A stretch of 64,000 bases of DNA, from NCBI GenBank assembly GCA_037447605.1, contig CM074809.1:2222689-2286688 (forward strand), in the 5' to 3' direction. Position 1 is the first letter of the stretch. Every line of letters begins with the position of its first letter. The notes beneath the pieces were generated by a model. That model had not been told where the DNA came from. It did not search any database and was given only the letters and a program-made list of their open reading frames with translations. Shown piece by piece: positions 5,521 to 64,000 of this stretch. This DNA comes from Zygnema circumcarinatum SAG 698-1b (taxonomy: Eukaryota > Plantae > Zygnematophyceae). The position numbers and the translations under genes are program-made.

Positions 5521-5545
5521 ATCACGATCACGTTATAATCACGAT

Positions 5546-6023: not shown

Positions 6024-6221
6024 CTGCACAGACTTACCGTACTAAAAGTAGTTTCCTCAAAATCAGGGCGAATTTCTTGGGTAACGAAGTACTGGGGTGG
6101 AAAATATTTGGGGGGGGGGGGGGGGGAAAGGGGGCACTGTACAGTACTGTAGCGGATTACAGTACCGTACACGGAATTGTACGAACAACAGCAACATGGA
6201 GAACCACGAAAAGCGCTCACA

Positions 6222-6706
6222 CCCTAACCCTAACCCTAACCCTAACCCTAACCCTAACCCTAACCCTAACCCTAACCCTAACCCTAACCCTAACCCTAAC
6301 CCTAACCCTAACCCTAACCCTAACCCTAACCCTAACCCTAACCCTAACCCTAACCCTAACCCTAACCCTAACCCTAACCCTAATCCTAAACCTAATCCTA
6401 ACCCTAACCCTAACCCTAACGCTAGCCCTAAGCCTAACCCTAACCCTAACCCTAACGCTAACCCTAAGTCTAACCCTAACCCTAACGCTAACCCTAAGTC
6501 TAACCCTAACCCTAACGCTAACCCTAAGTCTAACCCTAACGCTAACCCTAAGTCTAACCCTAACCCTAACGCTAACCCTAAGTCTAACCCTAACCCTAAC
6601 GCTAACCCTAAGTCTAACCCTAACGCTAACCCTAAGTCTAACCCTAACCCTAACCCTAACCCTAACCCTAACCCTACCCTAAACCTAAGCCTAACCCTAA
6701 CCCTAA
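6222..6706 (+). repeat. Interstitial telomere-type (CCCTAA)n/(TTAGGG)n tract, ~80 units
   Basis: Perfect CCCTAA 6222-~6383, then variant units (TCCTAA, CGCTAA, CCTAAG, GTCTAA). Confidence 0.95.
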
Positions 6707-6787
6707 AAGTTTCGCCCCTCGCAAACCCTCTCCCGCAGAGCCCCGCGCTCGCTCGCTCGCTCGCAGGAGGAAGGGAGGGCGCCATCC

Positions 6788-7993: not shown

Positions 7994-9520
7994 ATTTTTG
8001 ATGCATAAGTTTCGTTGCTTTCAATCACGTCGAGGTTCAAGGTTGAAATATGTGCACCTCAGGGAAGCTGCTCGGGACCTTTACGAGAGTTTACAACTTC
8101 TGTGAGTTCGAGGTTCCATTTGCAATAGATTTTCTACAGGACTGTAGTGAGAATTGGGATTGCTCTGCAAGACAGTTTCGCTGCCCAAGGCGCCAGGCAC
8201 ATCATAACTGGCCTTCGACAGCCCACTATCTTTAAGGGAGGTGGACTAGACCTGTGAGTTGGATGCAATTATGCTCCACCAGAGCTGCAATCATGAGCTT
8301 TTGAAGCCATGTGCGCCAGGTATGCTGCAAGCCTCCCGCTAAGATCCCACAATCTTGTAGAATGGTAAATGTCCAGGAAAGAAATTGTAAATGTACACGG
8401 CAGGCCAGTGTGTGTTTACTTGATTTCATGCACGCATTCACTCAGCCGCATCCAGGCTGGAGTATATGAAGTGGTAACGGCTGCAGTCATGGTTCGCCAA
8501 TCTCTAGCATGTCCAAGTTTTAGTTCCACACTTTGTTATCGATGTGCTTCATTCCGAGATTTAGAGTATCTTGTTGATACAAGGCGATGATTCACTTGCC
8601 ATCTCGCTGTTCGTTTTCTGTACAGCGGAATAAAGGGGAGCGCCAAGTGGTGAAAAGACGGAATATGGATGACTCGTCATGTTGGAATTCAATGACAAAC
8701 TTGTTCCCTTCTCTTGGGATTTGGTCGAACTCTTTTCTCGAGCATGACGTTGAAACCTAGTGTTTATTAAGAAATGTGGGTATGGATTTTGCTCTGGGTT
8801 TTGGAGCCCTTGCAATACCTGGTGCGGTATAGAGGCTTTACAAAAAAACGAAATGTTAAGAGATTTTTCCTCAAAAGGGTTGCATAGACCTTGTCTTCAT
8901 CAGATGGGTTTGCTTTTTGGTCCAATTTGCAGAGCAGTTTTTCGTTCGCGGTATTGTGTGCCTGAGCTGCCTGACCCAACTTAATGCTTCGTCATAAGCA
9001 CGAAAAGGAGCAACTCACGCTCTGACGGCTGCATGTTTTGAAGTCGAAGCGATTGAGCTGATGCTCCATGTGCAAGGCTGTGCATTGGATCGGTGTTGAC
9101 ACATGGGAAGCCCAGAGGGACTACCGTACATGTATTTTGAGTTGGATTCAGAATTCTAGAATTCAGAACAGGTGAATGAATCAGTCACTTGCTGCATGTT
9201 TTTGCATCATCGCCGTATGGGCAATCGTGCCACAATGAACATCCTTCGATGGTTCTGTGCCATGCGAAGCGATGTACAGCGTGTCACGCTGTCAAGCAAT
9301 GCAAGGAAGACAAATAAGAGCAGTCCCATGAACATTGGTGTCTCAGCTGACCTGTGCCAAATCCACCTTTATTCACAATCATGGTGACAAAAGACGGTGA
9401 CGCTTATAATCCTCCTTTTCCTGGGTATATTACAATGGAAAACTCTTTCAAAAGCAGAAATGCAAGACCATTCACTACCGTCCTGAACGTCATTTCAACA
9501 TATGTACAGCAAGCTCTAAC

Positions 9521-11469
9521 TTAGTTCCGGCCTATTGGAAGGTTCCTGCAGGAATAAGTCTCTTTAGAAGTCTCTTTTCTCGAGGACACAAAAATAGAGG
9601 AGTACACTGATTTTGTGGCTCCTTCAGGCACATGGTTTGATGCCTTAAACCGCTTGGGCTCCTCCACTCTGTCTGATCCTTTTGGCCTGGCTACCGGATC
9701 TCGCTCTCCTCCAGCTGCCATCGATGTTACAATACCAGTTGAAACTTTAAGGGACGATTTTCGCTTGAGGCCCACAAGACCATCAGCCTCCCGCAACTCC
9801 CCAGTGGCCGGTATAACACCCCCCATTCTACTTGTGATAGTTGCATCCTTCACCAAAAGGTCACCTTTTGCCGAATCTTCGTATACCTTCTCTGTTTTCT
9901 TTTCTTTCTTCGAACCTTTCACCTTTGACTTGGCTCGTTCTTGCTCCATGCGCACTCGTAAAGCATCTACTTCCGCCTCCGTGCCATTTATCGTTATCTT
10001 GTCATGTTCCTCAAATGGTGTATGACAGACAAGGCAAGCGGACGTCTGTACCTCTTTTAATGCTCGTGCGCTAAGAACGTGCCCACAACTTCGCAGTGCG
10101 TAAAATTTGAAAAGACCATTGAACTCCAGTCCTGTGATTGGGCAATGGAATCTGTACACAGTGCAGCCAAAAAGCAAATGTCAACTCTCGGTAAAACTTT
10201 CAGCCTCACAGCCAAGGTCATTGAATCTGCGTCAGAACAACCACAAACAGGGTGCAACACTGCACTTGTTCGAGGGGAAAAACCTTTCGTACTGAATCAG
10301 GAACATGCACACGTTTGACACAAAACAGAGCAAGAGCATCCCTCGGCTTTAGAAAAACAGCGACTTCCATACTGGTGCCTTGGGCAGGGTTAGTGACAAG
10401 CATTCCCACAATGGCGAATGAAATGACAAATAACGAAGGAACTTGTCCTTTGGGAAACTACATACAGGTTTCCCAACCCTTTGTTCTTTTAGAAAAGCAA
10501 CTCGAAAACCCTCGTAAGTTGTGAAACAAAGGCCACCACATTCACCAAAACCCTGGCTCCACAAGGGTTCACAATAGTTGATATTCGCCACAGATTTCTT
10601 TTCAAAAGGGGCAGGAAATTGACAGAAACAAAAATGACGAGTGCCATCTCAAATACTTCGCTGAGACTATAAAAACGAAAAAGCCAGTGCGAGGGTGAAC
10701 TACACAGTTCGACGAAGAAAGAAGAGAGTGGTCGCTTTTCCACTTGACGCCACCCAACTGGATGTAAGAAATGTTCCGAAAAATCAGTTTCCTCACAAGA
10801 AAGCAGACACCGAGGAACCTGCATGAAACTTCTAATATAGCCGTCTGCTGCCTCTTGCCATATTCATTAGAACTGAGGAATTCACCGGAATGAGACTCAC
10901 CTGCTTGCATCGCTGCCATTCTTCTTGTCTGTAGTTGCTGGATTTTCCGTCAAATGAATGGTCACAATATCCCGCAAGCCCCTCAAATGACTCATCCTTG
11001 AAGGCATCGACTTGCTAACAAGCGCCTGGATTACAGCCTCCTTGTTAAAGAGGTTTCCCAAAAAATCGACTGCACATGGTGGAGCGAGTGCCACTCCAGA
11101 CAATTTGCACTGCATCCACTTCGCCAGCCGCGCTTCATTCGGATCCACCTTGTCCGGCTTCTTGTCCAGGTACATCGATAGATAGCAGTCTCTGGACTCG
11201 GCTCCTGTCGCGCCGCCATCCCCTCCTCCCCCTCGTAGAGATAGTCCCAATTCTAGGGTTTCCCCACCCCGCAACCCGCAGGCCGACACGCGCGCCTCGT
11301 CAGGACAGTGCCTTCCCCCATACCAAACACGCGAGGCGCGAAGGAGGTCCTGCGGGGCATTCGGCCAGGACGAGTCGAAGACAGCGCTCTTCACCTGCTC
11401 AATGGTTTCCGAGCTCTTTGCAGAAGCCGTTACCAGCGGGCCCCAGGCTGTCCGGAAAAATAGCTGCAT
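9521..11469 (-). CDS. RTF2: Replication termination factor 2 / Rtf2 RING-like protein with N-terminal ubiquitin-like domain; exons 11469-10901, 10151-9521 (399 aa)
   Basis: GGDGGATGAESRDCYL, LGNLFNKEAVIQAL, FHCPITGLEFNG..F.ALRSCGHVLS..AL, CLVC; phase-consistent GT-AG intron (AG|A). Confidence 0.92.
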
Positions 11470-21440: not shown

Positions 21441-24400
21441 CTACAGAGTAAATTCCACATTGTACCAACAGTTGGGAACAGGAATGACATTGTGATGGGG
21501 CACGAAAGGTTGAAGGCCAGCATTACAGAAGGGAAGGGAATTGTGAAGGGGGACCTGAGCTGCAGAATCTGCGCGGCACTTTGCATGGACAATGGGTCCG
21601 AGGTTGCCGCTGTCCACTTCCTCTCGACCGGGTGTCGGGCTATTCAGATATACAGCCCCACGATACAGCCACTCATCCGCATCGGGGCTAAAGAATACAT
21701 CAAACTTGTCACCACACAAGGCACAGGTGTCCTGTTTTTCATCTGCAGGCACTACGAATTCGGCTTTCTCCTCCACACTCTTGCCATTGCCCTCATGTGA
21801 AGAGAAAAACAGCGGAGCCGCCTGAACTGGTTGAACAGCAGTACCCGATAGCCAGTCCTTGGCCACTACGAACCACATGCGCGACTGCGTTCGCTGTTTC
21901 TTGAGTCGCTTGTTCTTCTGGTAATGCTCGTCCAAGTGACGAGAATATTTCTCCTGCTCGTTAAAGCGCAAACCACATGTTGCACATTGATACTTGAAAC
22001 CAGAATACAGCATATCCACGGCCCCTTCTTGCAGATCTTTCAATCGATCTTGCACAAACTCTCTCCCCATGGGATAACCTGCAGGTTGAAGGGACACTTT
22101 TGGAAGTGCAATATTCAAAGGAGTCTGAATTGGCTGCATGTGAGGTGCTACACCTAACATTCCAGCAGGATAAGTCGCAGACTGATAATAAGGTATGAAC
22201 TCTTGCACCATTGGCTGGGCAAAAGCAGCAAATTGTGAAGGTTCCGCAACAACTTGCGAGCTTGCGACGGATTGATTGGATGGATTGGGTGCAGAAGTAG
22301 ACACACCAATGACTCCCTGCTTCATAAGAGAGGAAAGAATGTTGTGAATGTTTGAAGGGTCAGATGTAGCACGATTATCCAAAGTGGGTGCAGTTCCAGC
22401 TGGAGCGGAAGGCCTTGCTGGTGGAGGACCAGGTGGCAAGGGGGGATGTATCCTTGCAACCTGCTGCTGAGGGGTAATCAATGATGCTAAGGATGGCTGC
22501 AATTGTTGCGAGACCGTCACAGGATAAGACGTTGGCAGTGGTTGCTGTGGGGTTAACGGTGGTAGCGCAGGCGCAGACGGTAAAGTCTGCGGCATGGGTA
22601 CTGATGGGAGGGCGGGAGCTTGCAGGATCTGTGGAGAGGGCAATGATGGGAACATAGCTTGAACTGTGGGTGAGAGCCCAGGCAATGCCCGCGGAGGAGA
22701 TTTTGTAGAAATGGAGGATGGAGGCTGCAAGCTCTGCTGAGAGGATGGTGATGCAAGCAGCTGTGGAGAAGTTGGTAGCCCTTGCTGTGGTATGAAGGAT
22801 GAGGCTAAGGAAGCAGAAGTTGAAGCCAATTGCTCTGATGCTGAAGGGGATGCACTTGATAAGGGTAATGACAAGGTCTGCTGTGATAGCAGGGAAGGGA
22901 GCAATGATGAAGGGGTTGAAAGCTGTTCTGATGGTGGTGGAGAATCTGAAGGTGGGGGGATTGGTGAAGAGTGACGGAATTTTGGCAGTTGAACACCAGA
23001 AAAAGGGAGAGACTGGGCTTTTTGTTCAGGTGAGGTATCCTCTGAAGCTGGACTTGGCAAGTCCGCTGCAGGCCCAGAGGCAGAAGGGAGCTGAGCTTCA
23101 GCTTCAGCAACTGAAGAAGGCTGGCCAGCAGCAGCTGGTTGGAGTCCCAAACTGGCAATAGGTACCGCCTCCTGCCTCGACCCAGGAGGTGGCAAACAAA
23201 TGCCTGACTCCATAAGTGCTTTTAAAATTGCCACGGGGTCCAAAGCAACACCTTCTGGAGAAGTATCTCCTGCAGATCCTGCCGCGGGCAACAATGTGGC
23301 CAAAGGGCCCTTCTCATTTGTGGATGGAACTTTGGGAGACTGAACTGGAGACTCTCGCTGCTCCACTGCCGCAGATGCCTGAGCCCGTGCCCAAGCTTCC
23401 AGTTTTGCTTGCTGACGTATTGCACGCTCTTGAGCTTGTGAAGAGGGCAAAACTAACGGTCGTGAAGACGAGCTGGGTCCCACCTTTCCTGTTTGGATCG
23501 CTGGCAATTTTGAAAGGCCAGAAATTGGTCGTCCACTCACTTGTGCAGAGCGAGATAGTTGTGCTTCGGCATCCGAGGTCTCGACCTTAACTGAAGAAAC
23601 CTGAGCGAAGAAATCTGGAGCTGCCAGCTCTCGTGAAGCTGAGACAAGTCTTTGCCTTTGCCTTTGGGAACCAGAGGAGGTAGGATGCTGCGGAGGCACG
23701 GGCGCACTCCGTAATGGAATGTCATTCCCAGCATCCAACGGCTCCAGTTTGACAGGCATCTTCAATGGTTCTTTCTCAGATACTTGTGCAGAATACCTAT
23801 TTTTTTCCTGCATTCGCAGTAGTGGTGACATTGTTGGGGCAGCTCCAGAAAGTTCTTTTTTTTTCAACTGTGCACCTGGTTGATGATCAGTCCCTAGGGA
23901 AGGTTGCAATTGAAAGAGTTGTTTAGATTCCCGTTGCACATGACCACTTAATCGCTGCTGGTGTTTTTCTCTGCCAGTTTGGCGCTGACCTACTGAAGGC
24001 GAGTCCCTTACAGTGGTAGCCCCACCCTGTGATCCTACCTCAACGCTCAACCTTGGTTGCTTAAGCACACTATATGGTTGTGCGACAACTGGTGGTGGAG
24101 GCTGGGCAGGAGACTCTCGTGGTCGAAGTTGTGGACCTGGAAGTCGTTGCTGCTGAGAACCAGGCACAGACTGTGGCCTTGCAGGGGCTCCCACCAGTGA
24201 CTGAAGATGAGGCCGGGGGAGCTGCCTAATTGCTTGCGTTGTAGGCAGCATGGTTCGACGGGCAAAAAGTGGGTTGGTTTCAACCGTTCGATCAAGTTTA
24301 CTCCCTTCTCTGGACGGCTGTCGAAGAATACCATTGCTGGAAGCGAATGAACCTGGCTCTGAGATTAATGGAAGCACCTTATCTTCCACCTGCAATATGC

Positions 24401-45600: not shown

Positions 45601-48299
45601 GCCCAACTCAGATCCATCTTTAATTGGTGGGGCGGGGGAGAAAGGGGGAACTCAGCTGGGAAGCTCAACAGGGCGATCCCGGAAGGGAAGGAGTGGTGCT
45701 GGCAGTCCAATGCGGCGTTCATCAAGTCCTGCTCGGAGGGCAACGAGTCCCATGCGGCAAGCTGGGGGAGCAGGAGCGATATCCTCCCCTAGTAAGCAGC
45801 ATTTCTTCAACTTCTCTTTAATTTGTTTCATTAGGGCGTGTCAAACAAGATTGTTTTTCGTAAGATTGATGCTAAACCGAGTACGCTGGGGGCATCGCCA
45901 TCCCCTGCAGAAGAGTACTTTCGTAACTTTTTTTTTTCGTAGTTCTGATTAGCATTTTTTGGCACGATTTTGTTAAGTTTGACACGCCTTATTGCAATGG
46001 AGCCACTCTCAATTAAGTGAAGGCAGCATTGCAATTGGATAGATATCAGTAATTAACTGTTTTCTGAAACACTGCCCCTTGAGAGCGGGAGGGTTGATGC
46101 TGTCGCTGGCCAGTGGTGAGAGGAAAATGGATGGTGACTTCCTTTGAAATTTATGAGAATCTGGGAACCCGCAATCTTGTGGTTGTAGGTGGGTTTACTG
46201 GACAGGAGGGGGAGGTATGGGGCCTACGAAGGTCAAATCAAGCCATGGGTCATGAATTAAATAAGCTGCGCGTGTTGGTAAGGCCTGCCTCCATTCTGTT
46301 GCGTGCTTTATGCTTGGATGAAGTAAGTTTGCTACAGCTTCGCAAGTGAGGGGCTTCTGCGTCTATCCTCTACTAACTAAATCTTCGTTTCAATCAGCCA
46401 CTTTTTGGTTTGTCATTGTCTCTCATTTACTTTACAATGTGCTATTCTCGAGCGCCCCTCTTCTCGCCGCTTCTCTTCTTCTCATCTCTCAATTGTATGT
46501 CAATGAGTGCGGTGCTGCAGCTCGTGAGCGTGCTTGCTTTGTGTGCTGGCGAGAGCAGGTGGAAGAATGGCGCGAACGCTGTGAGGTTTTGGAGCGCGCT
46601 CTGCACGATCAGAAGCGCTGGGGAGACGCGCAGGCGGCGGAGGTGGAAACTGGCAATGAGCTGCTCGCAGCCCTTTCGACTCAGGTCCAATTCCTCTGCC
46701 TGTCTATACATTTAATGAGGGAAGAAACCGTTGTCTGGTCGTATTTTGACAAATAGAATGCTTGCCCCTGTCCTGGGCATGTTTCTTTCTCCCATCTGAA
46801 CATCTGCGGCAATATCTCTGAAGAGTGGCAAATTTGGTATGAGAATGTGATGCAGCTCTCCAGTGCCATTCGTATGTTGCCACCCGGCAGTTCCCGACAC
46901 GCTAAGGTTGTAGCACGGGGAGTTCCGGGAACGATTCTTTATTCAGGACCACTGCTTGTGTCTGAGCCTCTTCCGGCCTCCCTTATGGAGCTGACAGAAG
47001 GAGCGGTGATAACCTCAACCTCCACAATTGCAGAGGAGGATGGCCTTCCACATCTCATCCGCACCAGCTCACCTGGGAAGCGAGCCCTCTCACGATCAGA
47101 AACGTCAAACTCAGGCTCACTTTCCCGAGGCTTCTCTATTAGCCATCTGTGGCATCATGCAAGCCGATCGAGCAGAGAACGAAGCTCGGGACCCCTAGGC
47201 AGTGGGAAACTTTTCTCAGAAAGTGGGGACTTGCTTGCCTCAGGGAATGAAGCGATCCTTTTGGGACAACGTCGGCCATGGCCTTCAGCAGATGGAGGTA
47301 GCAAAGGAGGACCTTTTGCTTCAGTTCCTCACCATAATAATGGCAGCATGGTTGAGGGACTCGACTTGAAGGGATCTAGCGGACGACGCAATGGTCCAAG
47401 TGGTTTCCATGCAGGGTTTGCAGAGAAAAGTGGAAGGATACTTGGCGAAGGGGCCTCAGGGGGGCAGGTGCCACCCCCAGAGTCTTTTCGCAAGGGGATT
47501 TTGGGAGCACCTACATTTTCAAAGTGGAGTGCGACTCTTTGTACAGATCCGGGGGGAGAAGATGGGGATAGCAGTGAAGCCAACACCCCAAGAGAGCAAC
47601 CACCTGACCGCCCTCCTCTGCCATCATCTGAGCGGGAGCTGGAATTCTCTGGACCTCACTTGCAGACAGTGGGAAGAAATGGGGAAGGGGAGGGTGGAGC
47701 AGATCCTATTCAAGCTACTTTCAACGGTCCTGCAAGAAATGGGGACGACTCTCATGCTGGAGTCCCTGTGCCAAGTACGAAGACAGTTAACAGCGAAGAG
47801 TACGCACAGATTCCAAATTTAACGGAGAGGAGAGAGTGGGTAGAGCATCCTGAGGAGGGGGTTCACCTCACACTCACACCGCATGCAATAGAGGGCTTCC
47901 ACGAGCTGAGGAGAGTTCAGTTCAGGTGGGTTTCTTGCCATCAGGGACGGACGAGGGACAGCAGCACTGACAAATTCTATCCGACTTTCGGAATTCGGTA
48001 GAAAAAAACTTCAATTAGTGGGTCGTCTAAAAGCTGCATCTCTGTAATAGTTTACTACTAAGCTTTAGGTTCACCTTTGAAAGTCGACACATCTCTTACC
48101 GAAAACCATAATTAACCTCGGGCATGTGGGGGTTTTTGGGAAACGCAGTGGAAAACTTTTCAATCAAACGCAGGCGGACACCTGGTGGGCGGAAAATAAG
48201 ACAAGGATACGCGAACAGTATAAAATAAGACCAGGCCGCACACGGGCTGCTGAAGTGACGCTGAGAAAGAGTGCGGAGACAGGCGGTCAGGATGCATAA
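39668..48299 (+). CDS. PH-RCC1-FYVE-BRX domain protein (PRAF/RLD family); start codon tentative
   Basis: RDIEQ|[21 protein letters not shown] (PH); several RCC1 repeats ([43 protein letters not shown]); [29 protein letters not shown]; [38 protein letters not shown]. Confidence 0.92.
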
Positions 48300-49634: not shown

Positions 49635-54606
<4,972 letters not shown>

Positions 54607-54971
54607 AGACGATAGGCGTAGGTTGCCCATTGATGGAGGGCCAGCCATCCATCGCAGGCCACTCAGGGAAAGTTAAACGGTCTGTGTGAGAGTGTAGGAG
54701 TAGGTTTGTACATGATTATTATGATTCAAGGAATGCTATTTTTGTGAAGAAAGGCACAATTGGTAATTGAATAAAGTTGAGTTTTACTTGGTTTTGATGT
54801 GTAAGTTAGGGGGAAAATGTTTCCAACTTTAAGTTCCGGCACTGTCACTGTCTCTTTTCTTAATGCAGCAACCATTTCAGCTCGAAAAGGAACTTCGCCA
54901 TGCTAAAAAAATGAAATTAGTGTGCTGATTTTTTATCTTCAATCTCGGATACCGGGTCTAGAGCCTGTAAT

Positions 54972-55252
54972 AGGGGGAGTCAGACCTTGACTATCGCCGG
55001 CGGAATTGAAAGATCCCGCCGGCGAAAAGGTATTAATTTCGATTGCAGAATTCGGTTCGGAAACCGCGACAGCCCCCGAACCTGTCTGTCCCGTCTGTCT
55101 GTCCCGTCCGTACTTCGAAATAGGTTACAAAAATGAGATACAGGTTAAATAAGTGTGATACAGGCTCGGCGCCCGAGCCTGTCGAACGTCCACTTTTGGC
55201 GAAAAAGGCCTGCCGGAATTGGTTTGGCGATGGACAAAGTCTGACTCCCCCT
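54972..55252 (+). mobile_element. MITE (281 bp), internal-deletion derivative of the 56120-61632 element
   Basis: TIR AGGGGGAGTCAGACCTTGAC.ATCGCC; flanked by AAT on both sides; halves match the two ends of the large element. Confidence 0.85.
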
Positions 55253-55328
55253 AATATTACACATTGGAAAATGCTGTTGACCGTGACCGGCCTCTCATTC
55301 AACTGGCATTGGGCCAGCCGATTGGCCA

Positions 55329-55347
55329 CGTGGTGTGGCGCCATTGG
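55329..55347 (-). promoter_or_regulatory. ERSE-type motif CCAAT-N9-CCACG (minus strand) in the spacer between two MITEs
   Basis: CGTGG 55329-33, 9 nt, ATTGG 55343-47. Motif match only. Confidence 0.35.
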
Positions 55348-55476
55348 CTAGCCCTGCTCCTGGTCCCTTACGCTGGTAAAGGGTTCGACGGGGGGAGCGT
55401 ATAAGGGGCGTGGGACGAATGCAAGGGGGGCATCTTGGAGTACTTGCAATCGTTCCAGAAACCAGCATTATACATT

Positions 55477-56043
55477 AGGGGGGGGTCAGACCTTGACCAT
55501 CGCCAAACCAATTTCGTAAGCCCGTCGGGCCTATTCCGCCGTGTACGGCAGGCCTTTTTCGCAAAAATGTGGCCGTCCGGCAGGTTCGGGCGCCGCGAAT
55601 TCAAGAAAATTATTATTTTACCTTCGTATCTCCGAGCCAGGTCTGACCCCCCCCTTTCGCCCCGCCGCGCTCCCTCCGCCGCCCGCCGCCCGCCGCCCGC
55701 CGCCCGCCGCCCTCCGTTTTGTCGCCACGCGCGCCTCACACGTGCGAGAGGCGCTCGCACTTGCGTGACGCGCACGGCGACAAGGCGGGGCACGATTCCT
55801 CATCGGCGGAAAGCTGGAATTTCGAAACGCAGGGCCTCCGGAGGCCCTGCGTTTCGGCGAGCGGATTTCGGCGGATTTCGGAAATTTGGGGGCATTTTTG
55901 TAACCTATTCCGTAGTACGGACGGGACATGACAGGTTCGGGGGAGCCGCGGCTTCCGAACCGAAACCTGGAAACGAAATCAATACCTTTCCGTATAGGGA
56001 ATCTTTGAATTTCGTAAGCGATGGTCAAGGTCTGACCCCCCCT
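55477..56043 (-). mobile_element. MITE (567 bp) of the same family, opposite orientation
   Basis: Same TIR; interior is the reverse complement of 61490-61632, 60370-60490 and 56120-56345; flanks ATT/AAT do not match exactly. Confidence 0.82.
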
Positions 56044-56699
56044 AATACAAGAAACTAGCCTTTTTCCCGTAATGCTTATCGTAACACGCCGAAATACATT
56101 CACTGTGAAGCTGACTATTAGGGGGAGTCAGACCTTGACCATCGCCGGCGGAATTGAAAGATTTCGCCGGCGAAAAGGTATTGATTTCGATTGCAGAATT
56201 TGGGTCGGAAACCGCGGCTCCCCCCGAACCTGTCTGTCACGTCCGTACGGAGGAATAGGTTACAAAAATGCCCCCAAATTTCAGAATTCCGCCGATGAGG
56301 AATCGTGCCCCGCCTTGTCGCCATGCGCGTCACGTTCGTGCGAGCGCCTCTCTGCCGCCGCCCGGACGCCGCGACCCGCCGCCGCGCAGAGCAGCGTTTC
56401 AGTGCTGGCACAGGTTTAGGGTTTCGCTTCCCACAGCACCAGCGCCCTCTTTCCGGCAACTGTGAGCACCACGGGAGAGCGGTGAGCGAAGACGCCAAGG
56501 CGAAGAGGTACTCCCTCTCTATTCCCCTCTGTTGCTGTCTCCCTCGTCTCTCCCTCTCTGTTCCCCCTTTCTCTCTCTCTTGCTATCTCCCTCTATCACT
56601 CTCGCCCTGTTATCTCTCCCACATTCTCCCCGCCTGTGCCACTCTGCCCCTGCCTCCTTCGGCCTGGCCCATGCCTCCCTTGTCTCCCTTGTTGCTCTT

Positions 56700-57330
56700 T
56701 CTGTTGCTGCTCCTGCTGCTGCTGCTTTTCTCGCTGCTTCGTTTTCTGCTGCTGCTGCTGCTTTTTCTGCTGCTGCCCCTGCTGCTGCACCAGTTGCTTT
56801 TAGTGCTCCTTCTTTCTCTGCTTCTGCTTCTGCTGCTGCTGCTGCTGTTTCCTTTTCAGCTGGTTTTGCTATTGTTGTGCTGTTGCTGCTGCTGCTGTTG
56901 TTGCTCCTGCCGTCTTTTCTGCTGCTGCCGCTGCTTTTTTTTGCTGCTGCCGCTGCCACTGCTGGTGCTCCTGCTTTTTTTGCTGCTTCTTGTCTGCTAC
57001 TGNNNNNNNNNNCTTTTTCTGTTGCTTTTGTTGTTGCTTCATTCTCTGCTGCTGCTGCTATTGTTGTTCTGTTGCTGCTAGTGCTGCTGGTGCTTTTTTT
57101 ACTGCTTTTTTTTTCTGATGTTTTTTTTGCTGCTTCTTTTTCTGCTGTTGTTGTGTTGTTGTTGCTGTGTTGCTGCTGCTGCTGCTGCTGCTATTGCTGT
57201 GCTGCTGGTGCTGGTGCTGCTGTTGTCCTTCTGCTGCTGCTTCTGCTGCCGCTGCTTTTTCTGCTGCTGCTTTTTCTGCTGCTGCTTTTTCTGCTACTGT
57301 TGCAGCATTCATTTTCTTTTTTGCTGCTGC
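56700..57330 (+). repeat. (CTG/GCT/TTG)-rich low-complexity arm, mirrored by CAG-rich tracts at ~58740-59930
   Basis: Directly visible simple-sequence tracts in inverted orientation. Confidence 0.85.
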
Positions 57331-57431
57331 ATTCCTCTTCCGCATTCCGCATTGCCCTGTCCTTGTGCTTCCCGTTCCTTATGCTTGTGTTGTGTGTATG
57401 ATTGCATATAATTCCTCCCCCTCCCCATCTA

Positions 57432-57502
57432 GTCGAAGTGGCGGATTGGTTACGCAACTGTTGCAAAACAGTAATAAAGGGGTTGAAATCCCCTCTTCGA
57501 CC
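57432..57502 (+). tRNA. tRNA-Cys(GCA)-like sequence, copy 1 (probably non-functional: T-loop TTGAAAT, 16-nt anticodon arm)
   Basis: Acceptor GTCGAAG/CTTCGAC; D-arm GCG-GATTGGTTA-CGC; ACTG-TTGCAAAA-CAGT; variable loop AATAA; T-stem AGGGG/CCCCT. Confidence 0.65.
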
Positions 57503-58606
57503 TTGCACTGTTTATTCATTCTTCCATTTGTATTCATTTATAGTTTTTGTGTTTGTGCTTCATGTCTTATATTTGTAGTTATTTTTCCAAGTTGTTTTTA
57601 TTGCTTTTTGCCTTTTCTTTCAAAACTTTGAATACGTTTTACATCATGTTTTGTTTAGAGCATATATAGGTAGTTTGCTAACAAAATTATGCTGGCACAC
57701 TCAGGAAAACCCGTCTTCTTTGGTTTTTGGAAACCTTGGTGGTATTAGCAACCATATCAAGTGCGGCAATGGGCTGTATTTGATGCCATCAGTACAATTA
57801 TAGAATCCCTTGTAACTGCGTGTGCTCAAAATCCAAAACGTCCGGACTTAAGAGAAACAAGCTGATAAAGGTGCAATTGATTCAACAACAATACAAAAAA
57901 TATGATTAGAAAAAGAATGATCGACGTGTGGGCAAAGGAGGGACAAAGTGGGCGGGGGTGGGAAGAAGAGGATCAACAAGAGAGACTGGAGAGGGTTGAG
58001 ATCCACTAAAGAGGAGAGCGAGAGTGAGTCGGGGATAAGGCATAAGAGGGAGACAACAACAAGAAGACTGTAAGGAAGGGGCAAAGAACACAAGATGCTA
58101 AGGTGTCACATACTAAGATGGGGAAGGAGACACACGGGGTGGAACAGGAAGGGAAGTGACAGAAAAAAGAGAGGGCAAGACACAGCAAGGAAAAACAGAG
58201 AATGGAGCGTGAGAGGGAGAGACAGTGGGAGGGAGGGAGCAAGTGAGCACACGGAGACAAACATGAGGAGAGATGGGCAAAAGAAAGGGTCGCAGGTGGC
58301 AAACTAGACGGACGTCTATATGAATAATCTTAACAGTCAGGAAGACAGTCTGTCTGCAGACCAGCCGTTCAAATGGAGTTTCCAAACACCAAGCTGCGAA
58401 GAGAGTGAAAAACAAAAAACAAACGCACCAAGGCCAGCATAAAGAGAGAGGAGGAAGCGGGTGAAGGATGGGGGGAGTGCACAAACAACAAAAGTGAGAA
58501 TGGGAGAGAGAGGGCACAAAGAGGGGGGAGGGGCAGAGAAAAAGCAAAAAAGCACAAACACAAAAACTATAAATGAATAAAAATAGAAGAATGAATACAT
58601 CGTACA

Positions 58607-58677
58607 AGTCGAAGAGGGGATTTGAACCCCTTTATTACTGTTTTGCAACAGTTGCGTAACCAATCCGCCACTTCGAC
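58607..58677 (-). tRNA. tRNA-Cys(GCA)-like sequence, copy 2 (intact B-box, U73)
   Basis: Minus strand GTCGAAGTGGCGGATTGGTTACGCAACTGTTGCAAAACAGTAATAAAGGGGTTCAAATCCCCTCTTCGACT; full cloverleaf except the anticodon arm is one nt short. Confidence 0.7.
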
Positions 58678-59109
58678 ATAATGGGGAGGGGGAGGAATAA
58701 CATGCAATCATACACAACACAAGCATAGGCAAAGGAACGGGCAGCAGAAGAAGAAGAAGAAGAGGCAGCAGCAGCAGCAGAAAAAGCAAGAGCAAAAAAA
58801 GCAGCGGCATAAAAAGCAGCAGCAACATCAACAGCTGCAGCAGGAGCTGCAACAGCAGTAGCAGCAGAAATAGCAAAAGCAGAAAAAGAAACACCACAAA
58901 AAGCTGCAGCAGCATCAACAGCAGCAGCAGCAACAGCAGCAGAAACAGCAGCACAAAACAAAATATGGTATACAAGGTATTCAAAATTTTGAAAGAAACT
59001 CAAAAAACAAAAAAAACAACTAAGATAAATAACCACAAATATTTTACATCAAATGCACAAACACAAACACTTTATATGAATCAAAATAAACAAATGAAAA
59101 AATAGTACG

Positions 59110-59180
59110 AGTCGAAGAGGGGATTTGAACCCCTTTATTACTGTTTTGCAACAGTTGCATAACCAATTTGCCACTTCGAC
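59110..59180 (-). tRNA. tRNA-Cys(GCA)-like sequence, copy 3
   Basis: As copy 2 but D-arm GCA-AATTGGTTA-TGC (pairing retained). Confidence 0.7.
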
Positions 59181-60493
59181 TTGATGGGGAGGGGGAGGAA
59201 TAACACACAGTCATACACGCAACAAAAGCATAAGCGAAGGAACGAGAGGCACAAGCAAAGGAAGGGAAGACTGAGGCAAAGGCAACATAGCAAGGGGCAA
59301 AGGCAAAGGATGTCGGGGCAGGGGCAAGGGAGGTAAAATACGGAACGTGGAATGCGGAATGCGGAATGCGGAATGACGAATGAAGCAACAATACAAATAA
59401 AACAAAACCTACAGCAGCATTAGCATAAAAGCAAGAGCAAAAAAAGCAGCAGCATGAAAAGCAGCAGCAACATCAGCAACAGCAGCAGCAACATCAACAG
59501 CAGCAGCAGGAGCTGTAGCAGCAGCAGCAGGATAAGAAGCGGCTGGAGCTGCAGCAGTAGCAGCAGAAACAGCAGCAACAGCAGAAGCAGCGGCAGCAGC
59601 ACAACAACAACAGCAGAAACAGGAGATGAAGAAGAAGGAGGAAGCAGCAGGAGCAGAAAAAGCAAGAGCAAAAAAAAACAGCAGCAACATCAACAGCTGC
59701 AGCAGGATGAGAAGCGGCAGCAGCTAGAGCAGTAGCAGCAGAAACAGCAGCAACAGCAGTAGCAGCGGCAGCAGCACAACACATAAACAATAGCAGAAAC
59801 AGCAGATGAAGAAAAAGAAGAGGCAGCAGCAGCAAAAAAACCAAAAGCAAAAAAAGCGGCAGCTTAAAAAGCAGGAGCAACATCAACAACAGCAGCATAA
59901 AAAGCAGCAGCAGCAGCAGTAGCAAAAAGAGCACCAAGGGAGACAAGGGATGCATGAGCAAAGGCGAGGGAGGCAGGGGCAGGTGCAAGAGCACAGGAGG
60001 CAGGGGCAAGGGAAAGGGAGGCAGGGGGAAGGGCAGGGAAGGCAGGTGCAGAGGCAAGGGCAAGGGAGGCAGGTGCAAGGGCACGGGAGGCAGGGGCAAG
60101 GGTAAGGGAGGCAGGGGCAAGGGCAAGGACTCACCGCTGCTCAAGTCCGCCGTCGTCCCTAAAAACCGATCGCGCTTTTGCCGTCGTCGCCGACTCACCG
60201 CTCACCGTTCAGTGGGGGAAGGCGAGACGACGCTCTGCTCACTCCCCTGCAAGGATGGCTCGGGCGGTGGCGAGGGAGGAACCCTAAACCCTAAACCCGT
60301 GCAGATCTGAGCTCGCAGCGAGCGAGCAGGCGAGCAGGCGGCGGACGCGAGGCGCCGCAGTGGGACGCCGCTCGCGCGGTGGTGACGCGCGTGACGACAA
60401 AACGGAGGGCGGCGGGCGGCGGGCGGCGGAGGGAGCGCGGCGGGGCGAAAAGGGGGGAGTCAAACCTGGGCCGGAGATACAAAGGTAAAATAA

Positions 60494-61162
60494 GGAGAAC
60501 TATATACCGCCCCCTTTTTTGGTTATCCCGCCATCGTTTTTTTGAAATCCGACCCTCCCATTTCGGCTATTCTGCCCCCCTCCCCCATTTTGGATATTTC
60601 GGGAGGAGATCGCCCCCCTGATTTGAATATTTCTTTCCCTCCCCTCCCGTCCTCTCCCCTCCCCTCCCCTGCCCNNNNNNNNNNAAGAAGAATCCTTCCT
60701 TCTTGCACTACAAGAAGGAAGGATTTCACATCAAGATCGGCAAGCATAGCGATAGCCGCCGACTCTACCTGCAATGCTTTAGCCGGGGGACCTACGAGGA
60801 CAGAGGTCTGGAAGAGAGTAGTAAGAAGAGGAATATCTCTCCTCTGCTCTCTCTCCTCTAGTCTTTCTCTCCTCTACTCTTTCTCCTCTGCTCATTCTCT
60901 CTCTCTCCTTTTTTCTCTCCTGTGCTCTCTCCTCTAGTCTCTCTCCCCTTTGCTCTCACTCCTCTACTCACACTCTCTCTCTCCTCTGCTCATTCTCTCG
61001 CTCCTTTGCTCTCCCCTCTAGTCTCTCTCTCCTCTACTCTCACTCCTCTGCTCTTTCTCTCTCCTCTATACTCTCTCTCCTCGGCTCTCGCTCCTTTGCT
61101 CTCTCTCTCTCTTCTCTCTCCTTTGCTCTCCCCTGTAGTCTCTCTCCTCTACTCTCACTCTG

Positions 61163-61202
<40 letters not shown>

Positions 61203-61490
61203 TCTGCTCTCTCTCCTCTAGCCTTCTCTCCTTTGCTCTCTCCTGTGCTCTCTACTCTAGTCTCTCTCTCCTTTGCTCTCACTCCTGTGCTCACTCTCTT
61301 TCTCTCCGTTGCTCTCTCTCTCGAACGTTGCGCTGATGTGTGAGAAGGAGAAAACGGGGGGGGGAAAATATCCAAAATGGGGGGGGGCGGGATATTTCAA
61401 AATAGGGGGCAGAATAGCCGAAATGGGACGGTCGGATTTCAAAAAAACGGTGGCGGGATAACCAAAAAGGGGGGCGGTATATAGTTCTCC
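60494..61490. mobile_element. Nested long-TIR (MULE-like) element inside the large element
   Basis: ~120-bp TIRs GGAGAACTATATACCGCCCCC...; exact 8-bp TSD TAAAATAA (60486-93 / 61491-98); the 55477 MITE shows the empty site; interior CT-rich with a gap. Confidence 0.88.
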
Positions 61491-61762
61491 TAAAATAATT
61501 GCTTTCTTGAATTCGTGACGCCCGAGCCTGTCGAACGTCCACTTTTGGCGAAAAAGGCCTGCCGTACAGAGCAGAATTGGCGCGAAGGGCTGGCGAAATT
61601 GATTTGGCGATGGTCAAGGTCTGACTCCCCCTATTACGAAGATTCAAAAGAAAATGGATCTTTAAAGCAATATATTTTTAGGGGCAGTTAAACATTGACC
61701 ATGGCGTAAGCAATTTAGTAAGCCTTTCGGGCAAATGAAGCACTGTCTAGGTACAGTCAACA

Positions 61763-62357
61763 GTCCTCATATTTTCGCCATGGTTTTGGCAAATATGAGG
61801 CGAAAATATTGATTTTTGCAAATAGAAGGTTCGTGTTACCAATAGGCTTTCGGTACCATGTTAGAGTTCATGTTTGCCCGTACGTATCGTATCGTCTAAT
61901 ATCGTATCGTATCATACCATATCCGTCAGTATCTGTCTTACTGTTCCGTATCGTATCGTCCAATATCGTACCATATCATACCGTATATATCGTACCGTGC
62001 CGTATCGTATCGCATACACGTAGTTTTCCGCTCTTCGCGTTGTTCGTCTCATTACGTGAAAAGATGTTTGATTGAACTCACGATGGCAAGGCCATCAAAT
62101 GTACAAGGAGAAAGTCGACATAAGGAACCAAAAGAAGCGGTCACCACGGACATAAGGACAGAGAGAAGGCTTGGAAATGGAAATCAACTTCTAGGCGCAA
62201 CAACACGGCACTAGAAGCAGCCGCGAAGGTCGCCAATGTGGGGCGCAGTACGCGCGGGAAGGGGCGAAAGACCACCGGGACGGGTCCCAACAACTGCGGC
62301 ACGTCGAAGGATCGTGGAAGCAAGACACCGCTGTAAGGCGACGGAAATGCGCTGTCG
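61763..62357 (+). repeat. Direct duplication, copy 1 (copy 2 at 62853-63430): ATCGT-rich segment plus CRE 3' end
   Basis: Essentially identical over ~500 bp after a few differences in the first ~70 nt; both copies end at gaps. Confidence 0.9.
62067..62357 (-). mobile_element. CRE-like retrotransposon 3' end (truncated by gap)
   Basis: PHIGDLRGCF* plus the family 3'UTR. Confidence 0.8.
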
Positions 62358-62367
62358 NNNNNNNNNN

Positions 62368-62786
62368 CCCCCCCCCCCCCCCCCCCCCCCTGGATCCCCG
62401 CGCCTCGCGCGCAGGATCCGACTGTGCACCGACGTACGGCACCGCGCATCGCGGCGTGGCCCGCGAGATGCGGCGAGCATGGGGACCGGAAGCAGGAATG
62501 TCCAATGGAAGACTGCCACGTGGCAACCTCTGACCCAAACCATTGGACATCCCTGCTTCCGGTCCCCCATGCTCACCGCATCTCGCGGGCCATGCCGCGA
62601 TGCGTGGCGCCGTACGTCGGTGCACAGTCGGATCCTGCGCGCGAGGCGCGGGGTCCGATTGTCTACATGATCTCTCCGCCCGAAAGATCCAAGGGGGGGG
62701 AGGGCGTGATTAGCCAACATGAAAGTACAAATTTTCCCGGAAGGGGGTGCGGATATCCAAAAAGTGGGGCGGCTGTATCATTTTCT
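62368..62786. mobile_element. Fold-back element: 117-bp inverted arms (62392-62508 / 62540-62656) and a right TIR resembling the MULE-like ends; left TIR presumably in the gap
   Basis: Near-perfect hairpin; the reverse complement of the right end (GAAAATGATACAGCCGCCCCACTTTTTGGATATCC) resembles the TIRs at 11653 and 60494. Confidence 0.65.
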
Positions 62787-63155
62787 TTTCTAGGGTTTTA
62801 GGGTTTTAGGGGTACGAATAGTACGGGTAGTACGGCTACAGTACAGTGGGGGGTCCTCATATTTTCGCCATGGTATTGGCCAAAAAGGGGCGAAAATATT
62901 GATTTTGCAAATATAAGGTTCGTGTTACCAATAGGCTTTCGGTACCATGTTAGAGTTCATGTTTGCCCGTACGTATCGTATCGTCTAATATCGTATCGTA
63001 TCATACCATATCCGTCAGTATCTGTCTTACTGTTCCGTATCGTATCGTCCAATATCGTACCATATCATACCGTATATATCGTACCGTGCCGTATCGTATC
63101 GCATACACGTAGTTTTCCGCTCTTCGCGTTGTTCGTCTCATTACGTGAAAAGATG

Positions 63156-64000
63156 TTTGATTGAACTCACGATGGCAAGGCCATCAAATGTACAAGGAGA
63201 AAGTCGACATAAGGAACCAAAAGAAGCGGTCACCACGGACATAAGGACAGAGAGAAGGCTTGGAAATGGAAATCAACTTCTAGGCGCAACAACACGGCAC
63301 TAGAAGCAGCCGCGAAGGTCGCCAATGTGGGGCGCAGTACGCGCGGGAAGGGGCGAAAGACCACCGGGACGGGTCCCAACAACTGCGGCACGTCGAAGGA
63401 TCGTGGAAGCAAGACACCGCTGTAAGGCGANNNNNNNNNNCGCGCCGCCCAAAAGAGCAAGGTCGGGCCGCACATTGCGCTCGCCCGTTGAAGTCGGCCG
63501 AGGTGGTATAACATGGGTCGGCTCGCGCTGCACAAGGTAACCCGCCTCCTGAGCCACGGCGGCAATAGCATCACGGACAACATTGTGGGCCAAAATGCGC
63601 TCGCCACCGCGTACACACCGAAGAAGATGCACACCCTGCGCATCAATCAAACGACCACAACCACAACGGGGAGAACCCTGCAAAGGGGGGTGGGGGAGCC
63701 CAAGACGAAGACGCGCAGCAAGCTGAAACTGGCTCGGAGAGAGTTGAAGGGTGGAAAAAATCGGGGTAGCAGCCAGCCACGCCCCTGCACCAGGACCAGC
63801 ACAAGATCGCAATCGAGCACGCGCAACATCGGAAGGGAGAGCCGCAATAAGGGTAGAAAACTCAGCAGCAACAACCTCCTCTGTCACAATAGTCTGGACG
63901 CGCGAAACAGACTCAACAGCCAGGGAAACAAAAGGGGGAACACGGGCTTGGGCACTAGAAGGGAGCAAACCATGAGCAGCGCGCAAAGCAATCTGGAAGG
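63156..64000 (-). mobile_element. CRE-like retrotransposon, 3' part with intact-looking zinc knuckle/RLE region; continues beyond window
   Basis: RLRSCAGPGAGAWL..LRLGL, CGCG..DAQGVHLLRC..RILAHNVVRD, REP, VRPDLAL; C-terminus PHIGDLRGCF* (stop 63300-63302). Confidence 0.88.

Follow-up and report, generated by a model that had tools for sequence, protein, structure and literature searches.

A high-copy repeat family with a tRNA-Cys-like core and a shortened anticodon arm in Zygnema circumcarinatum

Three tRNA-Cys-like units in a 64,000-nt stretch of Zygnema circumcarinatum SAG 698-1b DNA (contig CM074809.1; hereafter the window) probably belong to a high-copy nuclear repeat family that is built around a bacterial-type tRNA-Cys(GCA) relic, no longer decoding, and has spread locally by segmental duplication. 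The repeat family is new but of a broadly known kind, neither a working tRNA nor a defined transposon, and literature searches yielded no description of it.

Each unit is 71 nt long and is recovered, in the place where an earlier sequence-only reading had put it, by ARAGORN, with tRNA calls at 57432-57502(+), 58607-58677(-), and 59109-59180(-), and by the Rfam tRNA model RF00005 (Table 1). Covariance-model scoring, a check which that reading had itself proposed, gives 46.4, 52.0, and 51.4 bits for copies 1, 2, and 3, all above the gathering score of 29; E-values across the window range from 1e-8 to 1e-6, and the alignments cover the full model (1-71). The units are thus genuine tRNA-Cys-like cloverleafs, as had been claimed, in which both programs find acceptor, D, anticodon, and T arms. 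The acceptor stem has 7 bp (GTCGAAG/CTTCGAC) and the T stem 5 bp (AGGGG/CCCCT); the D stem pairs G10-C25, C11-G24, and 12-23, with a mismatch at 13.22. Copies 2 and 3 have the B box GGTTCAAATCC and T73; in copy 1, GGTTGAAATCC stands in the B-box place and position 73 is C. Judged from the variant table of public contigs, copy 2 equals the family consensus, in which the A box TGGCGGATTGG and the B box are unbroken. The single-sequence minimum free energy structure of copies 1 and 2 is not the cloverleaf (-27.1 versus -25.6 kcal/mol); such a difference is common among tRNAs and is therefore not counted against the tRNA shape. In all three copies an ORF runs uninterrupted across the module; a word search with the module part of this ORF gave no protein match, and an exact look-up of an antisense ORF found no record. 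The best protein match of a TAF8 ORF, in the collection searched, is at 34%.

Table 1. Positions of the tRNA-Cys-like units, their arms, their flanks, and the duplicated segments that contain them
Feature	Position	Strand	Basis	Remarks
Copy 1, tRNA-Cys-like	57432-57502	+	Rfam tRNA 46.4 bits, ARAGORN	Private C56G in T loop/B box; C73
Copy 2, tRNA-Cys-like	58607-58677	-	Rfam tRNA 52.0 bits, ARAGORN	Equal to family consensus; A and B boxes intact; U73
Copy 3, tRNA-Cys-like	59110-59180	-	Rfam tRNA 51.4 bits, alignment	D-arm variant A12, A13, T23
16-nt 'anticodon' arm, copy 1	57457-57472	+	Pattern search, folding/energy evaluation	ACTGTTGCAAAACAGT, 1 nt below canonical
Counterpart arms, copies 2 and 3	58637-58652 and 59140-59155	-		ACTGTTGCAAAACAGT
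Upstream flank, copy 1	57380-57431	+	Alignment; 20-mer search	Contains CCTCCCCCTCCCC motif; 20-mer matches only the 3 units
Upstream-flank counterparts, copies 2 and 3	58678-58759 and 59181-59264	-		
T-rich downstream flank, copy 1	57503-57656	+	Alignment, self-BLAST; 26-mer search	T5 at +42 to +46; 26-mer matches only the 3 units
Downstream counterpart, copy 2	58548-58606	-		T5 at +24
Downstream counterpart, copy 3	58956-59109	-		T6 at +8
~1-kb unit with copy 1	56644-57656	+	Self-BLAST, TRF	Left arm of inverted duplication
~1-kb unit with copy 3	58956-59982	-	Self-BLAST, inverted repeats	Right arm of inverted duplication
~413-nt unit with copy 2	58548-58962	-	Direct repeat, self-BLAST	Tandem to copy-3 unit

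The three units share an anticodon arm that is one nucleotide short, a defect already recognized in the sequence-only reading. The arm sequence has three exact matches in the window, one per unit, where 0.08 would be expected by chance. With 16 rather than 17 nt, no copy can form the canonical 5-bp stem and 7-nt loop with GCA at 34-36; Infernal fits the arm only with a deletion and a non-standard pair, and ARAGORN forces an 8-nt loop, reported in each call as an odd 'gcaa' loop. The lowest-energy variant of the cloverleaf folds the arm as a perfect 6-bp stem capped by a GCAA (GNRA) tetraloop, and this predicted form is the best reading of the arm. An arm this short may not expose GCA as an anticodon. 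The best-supported family variants in public contigs have no substitution or indel in the arm, a result that, together with the identity of the arm in all copies, indicates that the defect predates amplification. The ARAGORN loop would suit working tRNA genes with non-standard decoding, in which a 4-bp stem and 8-nt loop read a four-base codon or a 6-nt loop is used, and the remaining cloverleaf is intact in copies 2 and 3, U73 and GCA included. Such decoding is so unlikely as to be almost negligible: besides the missing nucleotide, the lowest-energy tetraloop hairpin would present no anticodon, the repeat DNA that contains the units is high-copy and decaying, and the acceptor stem and B box are disrupted in family variants. 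We know of no natural nuclear decoder of such a short-arm form.

The Cys-type features of the units are GCA in the sequence of all copies, C3-G70, and T73 in copies 2 and 3 (C73 in copy 1); U73 and G34-C35-A36 are the major identity determinants of tRNA-Cys (PMC9976931). The D-arm combines the 13.22 mismatch with a D loop AUUGGUU and U15 opposite A48. Its 19-mer, GTGGCRRATTGGTTAYGCA, is found exactly, in the same register (positions 7-25), in 9 bacterial and 7 phage tRNA-Cys genes, from Alphaproteobacteria, Xanthomonadales, Saccharibacteria, Anaplasmataceae, and phages, upholding the bacterial character first suspected from the letters alone, in a comparison made with bacterial and phage tRNAs. 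In total, the 19-mer has 41 genome matches in 596 billion bases, 28 of them outside tRNAs, for an estimated ~35 expected by chance. Full-length identity to bacterial and phage tRNA-Cys is 58-64% (best 64%), and no close donor tRNA was found among bacterial, phage, viral, and metagenome collections. A 23-mer of the T arm and acceptor has 0 matches in viral contigs, patterns of the arm plus T arm, also with a canonical loop, have 0 matches in metagenome and viral collections, and blastn against 50,697 phage records returns partial, non-significant matches only (best E-value 0.04). Among the best-supported contig variants there is also no high-depth form with a canonical arm, such as an organellar trnC at ≥80% likeness. 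The source of the relic is most plausibly organellar, and probably mitochondrial. NUMTs and NUPTs, and the bacterial-like trnC(GCA) of eudicot mitochondria (PMC3646698), resemble the family in placing a bacterial-type tRNA-Cys in an unexpected compartment. An ordinary insert, however, is single-copy and near-identical to the organelle, whereas this family is high-copy, has non-organellar flanks, and has no close source among the collections searched.

The extent of the family is seen in public runs from eight studies, all consisting of assembled contigs and none on record as RNA; for two of them, X1 and X17, the kind of run is unknown or guessed, and their contigs are not counted as expression. 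Across the eight studies, the module is high-copy in this streptophyte together with ~50 nt upstream and at least 85 nt downstream. In two DNA runs, 57381-57585 has a summed contig depth ~5-30 times as high as the bins next to it, in line with the earlier proposal that the units belong to an amplified family. The upstream flank is about as deep as the tRNA part in X1, X2, and X17; in run X8 the tRNA part is deeper than the flanks. The module is contained in contigs of up to 783 nt (X1, X17), and one contig joint, 57498>57380, points to a tandem variant of 119 nt. C accounts for 99-100% of the family's contig depth at 57485; the C56G of copy 1 is private to it, and at least this copy is therefore decaying. 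The copy 3 state at position 12 (57443 G>A) reaches ~12% of DNA contig depth in X2 and X8 and is a subfamily state. In X1 and X17 the dominant form is a further family variant whose 3' acceptor strand is damaged by loss of 57499 and by 57501 C>A.

Within the window, duplication of longer segments explains the copies: copies 2 and 3 form a 503-nt tandem, and copies 1 and 3 lie in opposite arms of a ~1-kb inverted duplication. All three copies have ~52-65 nt upstream and ~60 nt downstream in common, and copies 1 and 3 share ~155-170 nt downstream; the shared flanks described before are thus present on both sides. A direct repeat of 175 nt at 87% has a spacing of 503 nt, the distance from the start of one module to that of the next in copies 2 and 3, and self-BLAST aligns 58548-58759 with 59051-59264 at 85%. 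Self-BLAST also pairs 56644-57656 with 59982-58956 (69% identity over 1054 nt) and 57121-57560 with 58962-58550 (77%), and the ~1-kb inverted arms are collinear with further matches of 55479-55761 to 60359-60493 and 61491-61631. An adjacent element at 60493-61491 has sharp 87-nt TIRs and a duplicated AAAATA. In the left arm, a CTG/TTTTTCTGCTG-rich low-complexity tract is followed by CATTCCG repeats and then by the module. The head-to-tail units and the high copy number are those of a tandem or complex, satellite-like repeat. Tandem tRNA arrays with STR spacers in Entamoeba histolytica and plants share the head-to-tail units and microsatellite-rich spacers, and a plant survey places tRNA-Cys-GCA in large tandem clusters of one bryophyte, abbreviated Cpu (PMC2888827, PMC12652284). 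The units of those arrays are canonical and presumably working, whereas here all arms are short, the arrays are short and partly inverted, and the copies are decaying.

Some of this layout could have been created by assembly, if the palindrome around an N gap reflected mis-joined repeat reads and the true copies were fewer. A gap of 10 N (57003-57012) does lie inside the left arm, collapse or mis-joining is easy in a high-copy family, and no single public contig spans the 1,206-nt stretch compared. Such an origin is nonetheless improbable, given that independent X1 contigs match 57340-57461, 57526-58057, and 58028-58449 with 0-4 differences. The three copies also differ at specific sites and are therefore not one copy written three times.

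The sequence-only reading had called the units transposon-borne, and this description does not survive comparison with known element classes: no element ends or TSD delimit the units, tandem and inverted duplications explain the local copies, and tests for SINE, TRIM, and TIR structure all fail. The tRNA-like part is not 5'-terminal, as it would be in a SINE; positions -52 to -1 are common to all three copies at 85-96%. Because of this common upstream flank the units are not SINE heads, a point on which the same reading was right, and no flanking TSD is seen around them at the locus. tRNA-derived SINEs are similarly high-copy and nuclear, with A and B boxes, a non-decoding tRNA part, and a T-rich or simple-repeat region after it; they differ from the present family, which includes ~50-100 nt of upstream sequence, has no TSD or defined tail that could be found, and is duplicated as tandem and inverted DNA. 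The Helenus/TRIMp3 elements (Kojima 2024, PMC10886601), miniature LTR retrotransposons whose LTR contains a tRNA-like sequence, also have element sequence on either side of the tRNA-like block and carry it in direct repeats; these elements inflate tRNA predictions and mostly encode no functional tRNA. The direct repeat of copies 2 and 3 (58548-58759, 59051-59264), however, has no PBS-like TGG motif after its first member on either strand and no polypurine tract before its second, its TG..CA ends are inconsistent, and no TSD was found, 5-bp or other; long CTG microsatellite tracts and inverted copies are further differences. A TIR transposon or MITE is likewise rejected, as there are no sharp ends or TSD and the inverted similarity continues for ~1 kb, fading into mirrored low-complexity tracts.

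These comparisons bear directly on whether the tRNA-like module is a working internal Pol III promoter of a non-autonomous element, SINE-like or with a 'TRIMp3'/Helenus-like LTR. The module would then be conserved since only copies with an intact module propagate, and the window copies would be old insertions that were later duplicated. The intact A and B boxes of the consensus are consistent with this, as are the T5-T6 runs 8-46 nt downstream, a tRNA part that is less variable than the flanks and in X8 deeper than them, and the existence of Helenus-type elements with tRNA-like LTRs (PMC10886601). We regard a promoter as unlikely: a Pol III transcript started at the tRNA would omit the upstream 52 nt, yet these are in the family at about the depth of the tRNA part (X1, X2, X17). 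The missing PBS-like TGG, polypurine tract, consistent TG..CA ends, and TSD argue in the same direction, segmental duplication explains the local copies, and a T-rich flank would contain T runs in any case.

Variation among the copies is uneven. Variable columns number 5 of 71 in the tRNA part and 30 of 114 in the flanks of the three copies (Fisher p=0.0009), and the substitution identity of copy 1 to copy 3 is 93% in the tRNA part versus 77-85% in the flanks. This lower variability could mean constraint or gene conversion. Outer segments of the arms are 86-93% identical, and the tRNA part is not clearly less variable than these; the contrast may therefore reflect only fast-mutating T-rich flanks. 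The changes of copy 3 (G12>A, G13>A, C23>T) are all C>T transitions at CG/CHG sites on one strand or the other, as anticipated by the caveat that CpG decay could mimic compensation. The 'compensatory' D-stem change amounts to two CpG transitions and is rejected as a sign of selection; since the two CpGs pair with each other, at least half of double-deamination outcomes keep the D-stem pairing. With the C56G and C73 of copy 1 and the acceptor-damaged family variant, these transitions are signs of decay, and the core appears to have no present function. The family consensus nevertheless has perfect acceptor and T stems, and its A and B boxes are whole; in a purely dead sequence this would be unexpected, except in a young family.

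Retention of the module for work at the RNA level, with hundreds of loci giving a Pol III-transcribed or RNase P/Z-released, tRNA-shaped RNA that descends from a bacterial/mitochondrial tRNA and has a GNRA tetraloop in place of its anticodon loop, is quite unlikely. Were it true, the module would be the promoter or processing module of an undescribed mobile element, or a source of small RNA, and the lower variability of the tRNA part would be selection. The module might also be a tRNA mimic of the mascRNA/MALAT1 or GUT15 type that RNase P and RNase Z cut from longer host transcripts, releasing tRNA fragments or a stable small RNA; a GNRA-capped arm would stand in for the decoding loop. The acceptor and T arms, which RNase P/Z recognise, are perfect in the consensus, the 6-bp hairpin with GCAA is predicted to be stable, a plant precedent exists (PMC6152437), and the module lies inside the contigs of up to 783 nt from the two runs of unknown or guessed RNA kind. 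There is only a slim chance of such processing. The variant that dominates those same runs would, through its damaged 3' acceptor strand, spoil RNase P/Z recognition, and selfish amplification accounts better than host function for hundreds of copies within low-complexity repeat DNA. mascRNA/menRNA and Arabidopsis GUT15 (PMC11693755, PMC6152437) do share good acceptor and T arms and a non-decoding 'anticodon' arm with these units; they are, however, conserved host loci present singly, for which RNase P/Z processing and CCA addition have been demonstrated, whereas the present family consists of hundreds of repeat copies known from assembled contigs.

The preferred account, a non-decoding tRNA-Cys relic amplified within a nuclear repeat, suggests the following history. 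A founder tRNA would have lost one nucleotide of the anticodon loop, converting a UUGCAAA-type loop to UGCAAA, and the arm would then have closed as 6 bp plus a GCAA tetraloop. The short-arm version may have spread along with ~50-100 nt that lie upstream of it, a T-rich stretch of 85-170 nt downstream, and a CTG-rich microsatellite tract, itself variable. In the window, the copies would have multiplied at the DNA level, through the 503-nt tandem and the ~1-kb inverted duplication, with no discrete transposon insertion. For dispersal through the genome, the mechanism we prefer is unequal crossing-over or else the segmental duplication of short arrays.

For annotation of this genome, the family can be expected to inflate and confuse tRNA prediction, with hundreds of ~50-bit matches of undetermined anticodon, and should therefore be masked as a repeat. 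For the biology of the alga, it suggests that a bacterial-type, probably organelle-derived tRNA-Cys sequence became the core of a nuclear high-copy repeat that fits no standard class of tRNA-bearing element (SINE, Helenus/TRIM, or MITE). As the evidence stands, this is a moderately interesting repeat family and not a new RNA gene. Genome-wide confirmation of the slower change hinted at in the tRNA part would be a sign of a new kind of element that depends on a tRNA module, or of a tRNA mimic carried by a repeat, in the plant lineage.

Across the 64-kb window ARAGORN calls three tRNA-like genes and no others (Table), at the sites where the sequence-only reading had placed them, and each matches the Rfam tRNA model end to end (46.4, 52.0 and 51.4 bits for copies 1, 2 and 3; gathering score 29), the Infernal-type scoring that had been proposed as a check. 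In the model alignments, the acceptor stem (7 bp) and the T stem (5 bp) of all three units pair perfectly, and the D stem has three Watson-Crick pairs and a mismatch at 13.22. The B box reads GGTTCAAATCC in copies 2 and 3 and GGTTGAAATCC in copy 1; position 73 is T in the former and C in the latter. The anticodon arm lacks one position of the model and contains one non-standard pair, and its 16 nt, ACTGTTGCAAAACAGT, are the same in all units and occur nowhere else in the window (0.08 chance matches expected), confirming the shared arm, one nt short, described earlier. Two pairings had been offered for it, 4 bp with an 8-nt loop and 5 bp with a 6-nt loop. ARAGORN calls the 8-nt loop, with a four-letter 'gcaa' anticodon and no amino-acid identity for any unit, but a third form, a perfect 6-bp stem capped by GCAA (a GNRA tetraloop), has by folding energies the lowest energy of the cloverleaf versions in each copy, and in copy 3 the lowest of any fold. 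This predicted form would present no anticodon; that the units serve as a non-standard decoder is considered extremely improbable.

As read from the sequence, a loop GCA together with U73 and C3-G70 would fit a cysteine identity, U73 and GCA being the major cysteine determinants (PMC9976931). A search for the D-arm 19-mer GTGGCRRATTGGTTAYGCA in 185,579 bacterial and archaeal species, each represented by a single genome (596 billion bases, two strands), gave 41 matches where about 35 are estimated by chance. Thirteen of the 41 lie inside predicted tRNAs, exactly at positions 7-25, and nine of these are tRNA-Cys(GCA), from Alphaproteobacteria, Xanthomonas/Lysobacter, Saccharibacteria and an Anaplasmataceae genome; in IMG/VR, all ten matches fall in tRNAs, seven of them tRNA-Cys. 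Both D-stem states of the copies, G12-C23 and A12-T23, occur among the bacterial genes, which also have in common with the copies both the 13.22 mismatch and U15 combined with A48. Because of these shared features and the same register of the 19-mer in bacterial and viral tRNA-Cys, the D-arm is of the bacterial tRNA-Cys type, an agreement that follows by construction from a search with the D-arm 19-mer in a comparison set of bacteria, archaea and viruses. That type includes what a mitochondrial gene would be expected to show. The earlier suggestion of a bacterial-, organellar- or viral-looking D-arm is thus upheld, with whole-length identity to the bacterial tRNA-Cys genes matching the 19-mer at only 58–64%. 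No close relative was found in viral or metagenome collections, with a canonical 17-nt arm also allowed, or among phage records. Several bacterial (L027, L032, L035, L026) and viral-contig (L043, L046, L048) tRNA-like genes combine a Cys-type D-arm with odd or enlarged anticodon regions; ARAGORN labels them Ser, Ala or Glu, some are 90–94 nt long, and they may be tRNA-Cys relatives that contain introns or are unusual in some other way.

Alignment of the three units and self-BLAST of 54000-64000 place the tRNA-like part fourth in a composite unit that runs, on the tRNA-sense strand, from a CTG/TTTTTCTGCTG-rich tract through CATTCCG repeats and about 60–100 nt of upstream sequence with CCTCCCCCTCCCC, and ends after it in 60–170 nt of T-rich sequence. 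Copies 2 and 3 are in tandem (58548-58759 versus 59051-59264, 85%, period 503 nt), the ~1-kb unit of copy 1 (56644-57656) mirrors that of copy 3 (59982-58956; 69% over 1,054 nt), and an outer mirror pairs 55479-55761 with 60359-60493 plus 61491-61631, its right side broken by a separate ~1-kb element with terminal inverted repeats (TIR). Given the mirrored units and the direct repeat, copies 1 and 3 are related by segmental inverted duplication, and a tandem duplication accounts for copy 2. Independent contigs match 57340-57461, 57526-58057 and 58028-58449 with 0–4 differences, so the core of the layout is not an artefact. A 10-N gap in the left arm could hide a further copy of the module (tRNA-like part with its flanks), and no one contig spans the layout; an assembly artefact affecting the local arrangement is improbable. 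The flanking low-complexity tracts are strongly strand-asymmetric; AT skew reaches +0.62 over 58001-60000.

Features of the window (all positions window-based)
Feature	Position	Strand	Remark
TAF8 gene, long open frame	6788-7993	+	Bromo_TP + TAF8_C; plant-type nuclear; best database relative only 34% identical (Ginkgo)
PCFS4-type zinc-finger protein gene, long open frame	21441-24395	-	plant-type nuclear
BRX-domain protein gene, long open frame	46847-48001	+	plant-type nuclear
Foldback, 428 nt	55868-56295		180-nt arms, 81% complementary, 68 nt apart; in left arm of large inverted duplication, absent from right arm and so looks like a later insertion
Low-complexity tracts	56300-57330, 58760-58955, 59390-60128		(CTG)n mixed with TTTTTCTGCTG, (CATTCCG)n heptamer, 21-mer GGCAGGGGCAAGGG-type repeat; long spurious ORFs without Pfam matches
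Assembly gap, 10 N	57003-57012		in CTG-rich tract left of copy 1
Copy 1	57432-57502	+	ARAGORN
Copy 2	58607-58677	-	ARAGORN
Copy 3	59109-59180	-	ARAGORN
TIR element, ~1 kb, non-coding	60493-61491		87-nt TIRs, 96.5% identical; TC-microsatellite interior; interrupts repeat left intact at 55590-55640 (reverse strand); AAAATA at both ends suggests target-site duplication of 6–8 bp, cut-and-paste transposon
Direct duplicate, 579 nt	61763-62341, 62853-63430		98.8% identity, including 300 nt at 100%; 1,090 nt apart; recent tandem duplication or repeat element pair
Long hairpin	62396-62653		89-nt arms, 96% complementary; Rfam matches below threshold only, to unrelated miRNA families; probably miniature inverted-repeat element

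The array had been described as transposon-borne. No sharp ends or target-site duplications were found around the units, and the direct repeat of copies 2 and 3 was tested for TRIM/Helenus features (after PMC10886601): on either strand it has no PBS after the first repeat, no polypurine tract before the second and no TG..CA ends. A SINE is ruled out because the 52 nt upstream of the tRNA part belong to the family, in agreement with the earlier view that this is not a SINE-type head. The transposon-borne description is therefore not supported, the copies being related by segmental and tandem duplication. Repeats derived from tRNAs are well known as a kind (SINEs, Helenus and tandem tRNA arrays; for the arrays, PMC2888827, PMC12652284), but the tRNA-Cys-like family matches none of their architectures and, as had been supposed, no description of it was found in the literature.

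The stretch 57340-58740 is present in runs of one organism from eight studies, and contigs of four runs were aligned to 57340-58545 for depth and variants. Summed contig depth over 57381-57585 rises to about 1,300–2,500 in public run X2 (about 50–400 alongside) and to 1,000–9,700 in run X8 (about 300–1,000 alongside); this sum is not copy number and is taken only to mean that the module is a high-copy family, probably of hundreds of copies. The majority state departs from copy 1 at 57408, 57429-30, 57485, 57506, 57530 and 57577, the G>C at 57485 restoring the B box; copy 2 therefore represents the family consensus for the tRNA part, while C56G is a private change of copy 1. In yeast SUP4, C56G is the classic mutation that lowers TFIIIC binding. 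At position 12 the copy-3 state (57443 G>A) accounts for about 12% of DNA depth and hence marks a subfamily, a variant whose 3' acceptor strand has one deletion and one substitution (57499, 57501) shows that decayed members exist, and in one contig 57498 is followed by 57380 again, a head-to-tail 119-nt variant of upstream flank and tRNA part. Among the best-supported variants listed, none has an indel or substitution in the 16-nt arm.

The D-stem change of copy 3 had been put forward as compensatory, with the caveat that CpG decay could mimic this, and it is the caveat that holds. The step from G12-C23 to A-T amounts to two CpG transitions, the two CpGs concerned being paired with one another, and double deamination of such CpGs keeps Watson-Crick pairing in two of four outcomes and gives wobble pairs in a third, so that the change is no evidence for selection; a further change, G13>A, is a transition in CHG context, on the opposite strand. 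Variable columns number 5 of 71 in the tRNA part versus 30 of 114 in the flanks (-52 to -1 and +1 to +60; Fisher p=0.0009), and change in the tRNA part is clearly slower than in these T-rich, slippage-prone flanks. Between copies 1 and 3, an old inverted pair, substitution identity is 93.0% in the tRNA part, 84.6% upstream, 77–83% downstream and 86–93% in outer arm pieces; the tRNA part is not clearly slower than other sequence of the same inverted duplication. Its slower change is a weak, unexplained hint of constraint, and C56G, one of five differences in the tRNA part, would impair any function it had as a tRNA-like unit or as a promoter.

In the family consensus both the A box and the B box are intact, and T5-T6 runs lie 8–46 nt downstream of the tRNA part, so that Pol III transcription is possible; such runs are expected anyway in a T-rich flank. 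By the same motifs the module might serve an unrecognised mobile element as its Pol III promoter, which seems unlikely. No listed run is on record as RNA. Contigs of up to 783 nt from runs X1 and X17, whose kind is at best a guess, contain the module and are enriched for the damaged variant; contigs show no starts, ends, strand or CCA. A processed tRNA mimic, by analogy with mascRNA or the Arabidopsis GUT15 tRNA-like RNA (PMC6152437, PMC11693755), would be quite improbable.

The family is, with moderate confidence, best regarded as the relic of a bacterial-type tRNA-Cys, most plausibly from an organelle, amplified as the core of a microsatellite-bearing repeat. A gene copy of such a tRNA would have lost one loop nucleotide, leaving a non-decoding cloverleaf with a GNRA-capped arm; this may then have been carried along to high copy number within that complex repeat, which would grow by tandem and inverted duplication.
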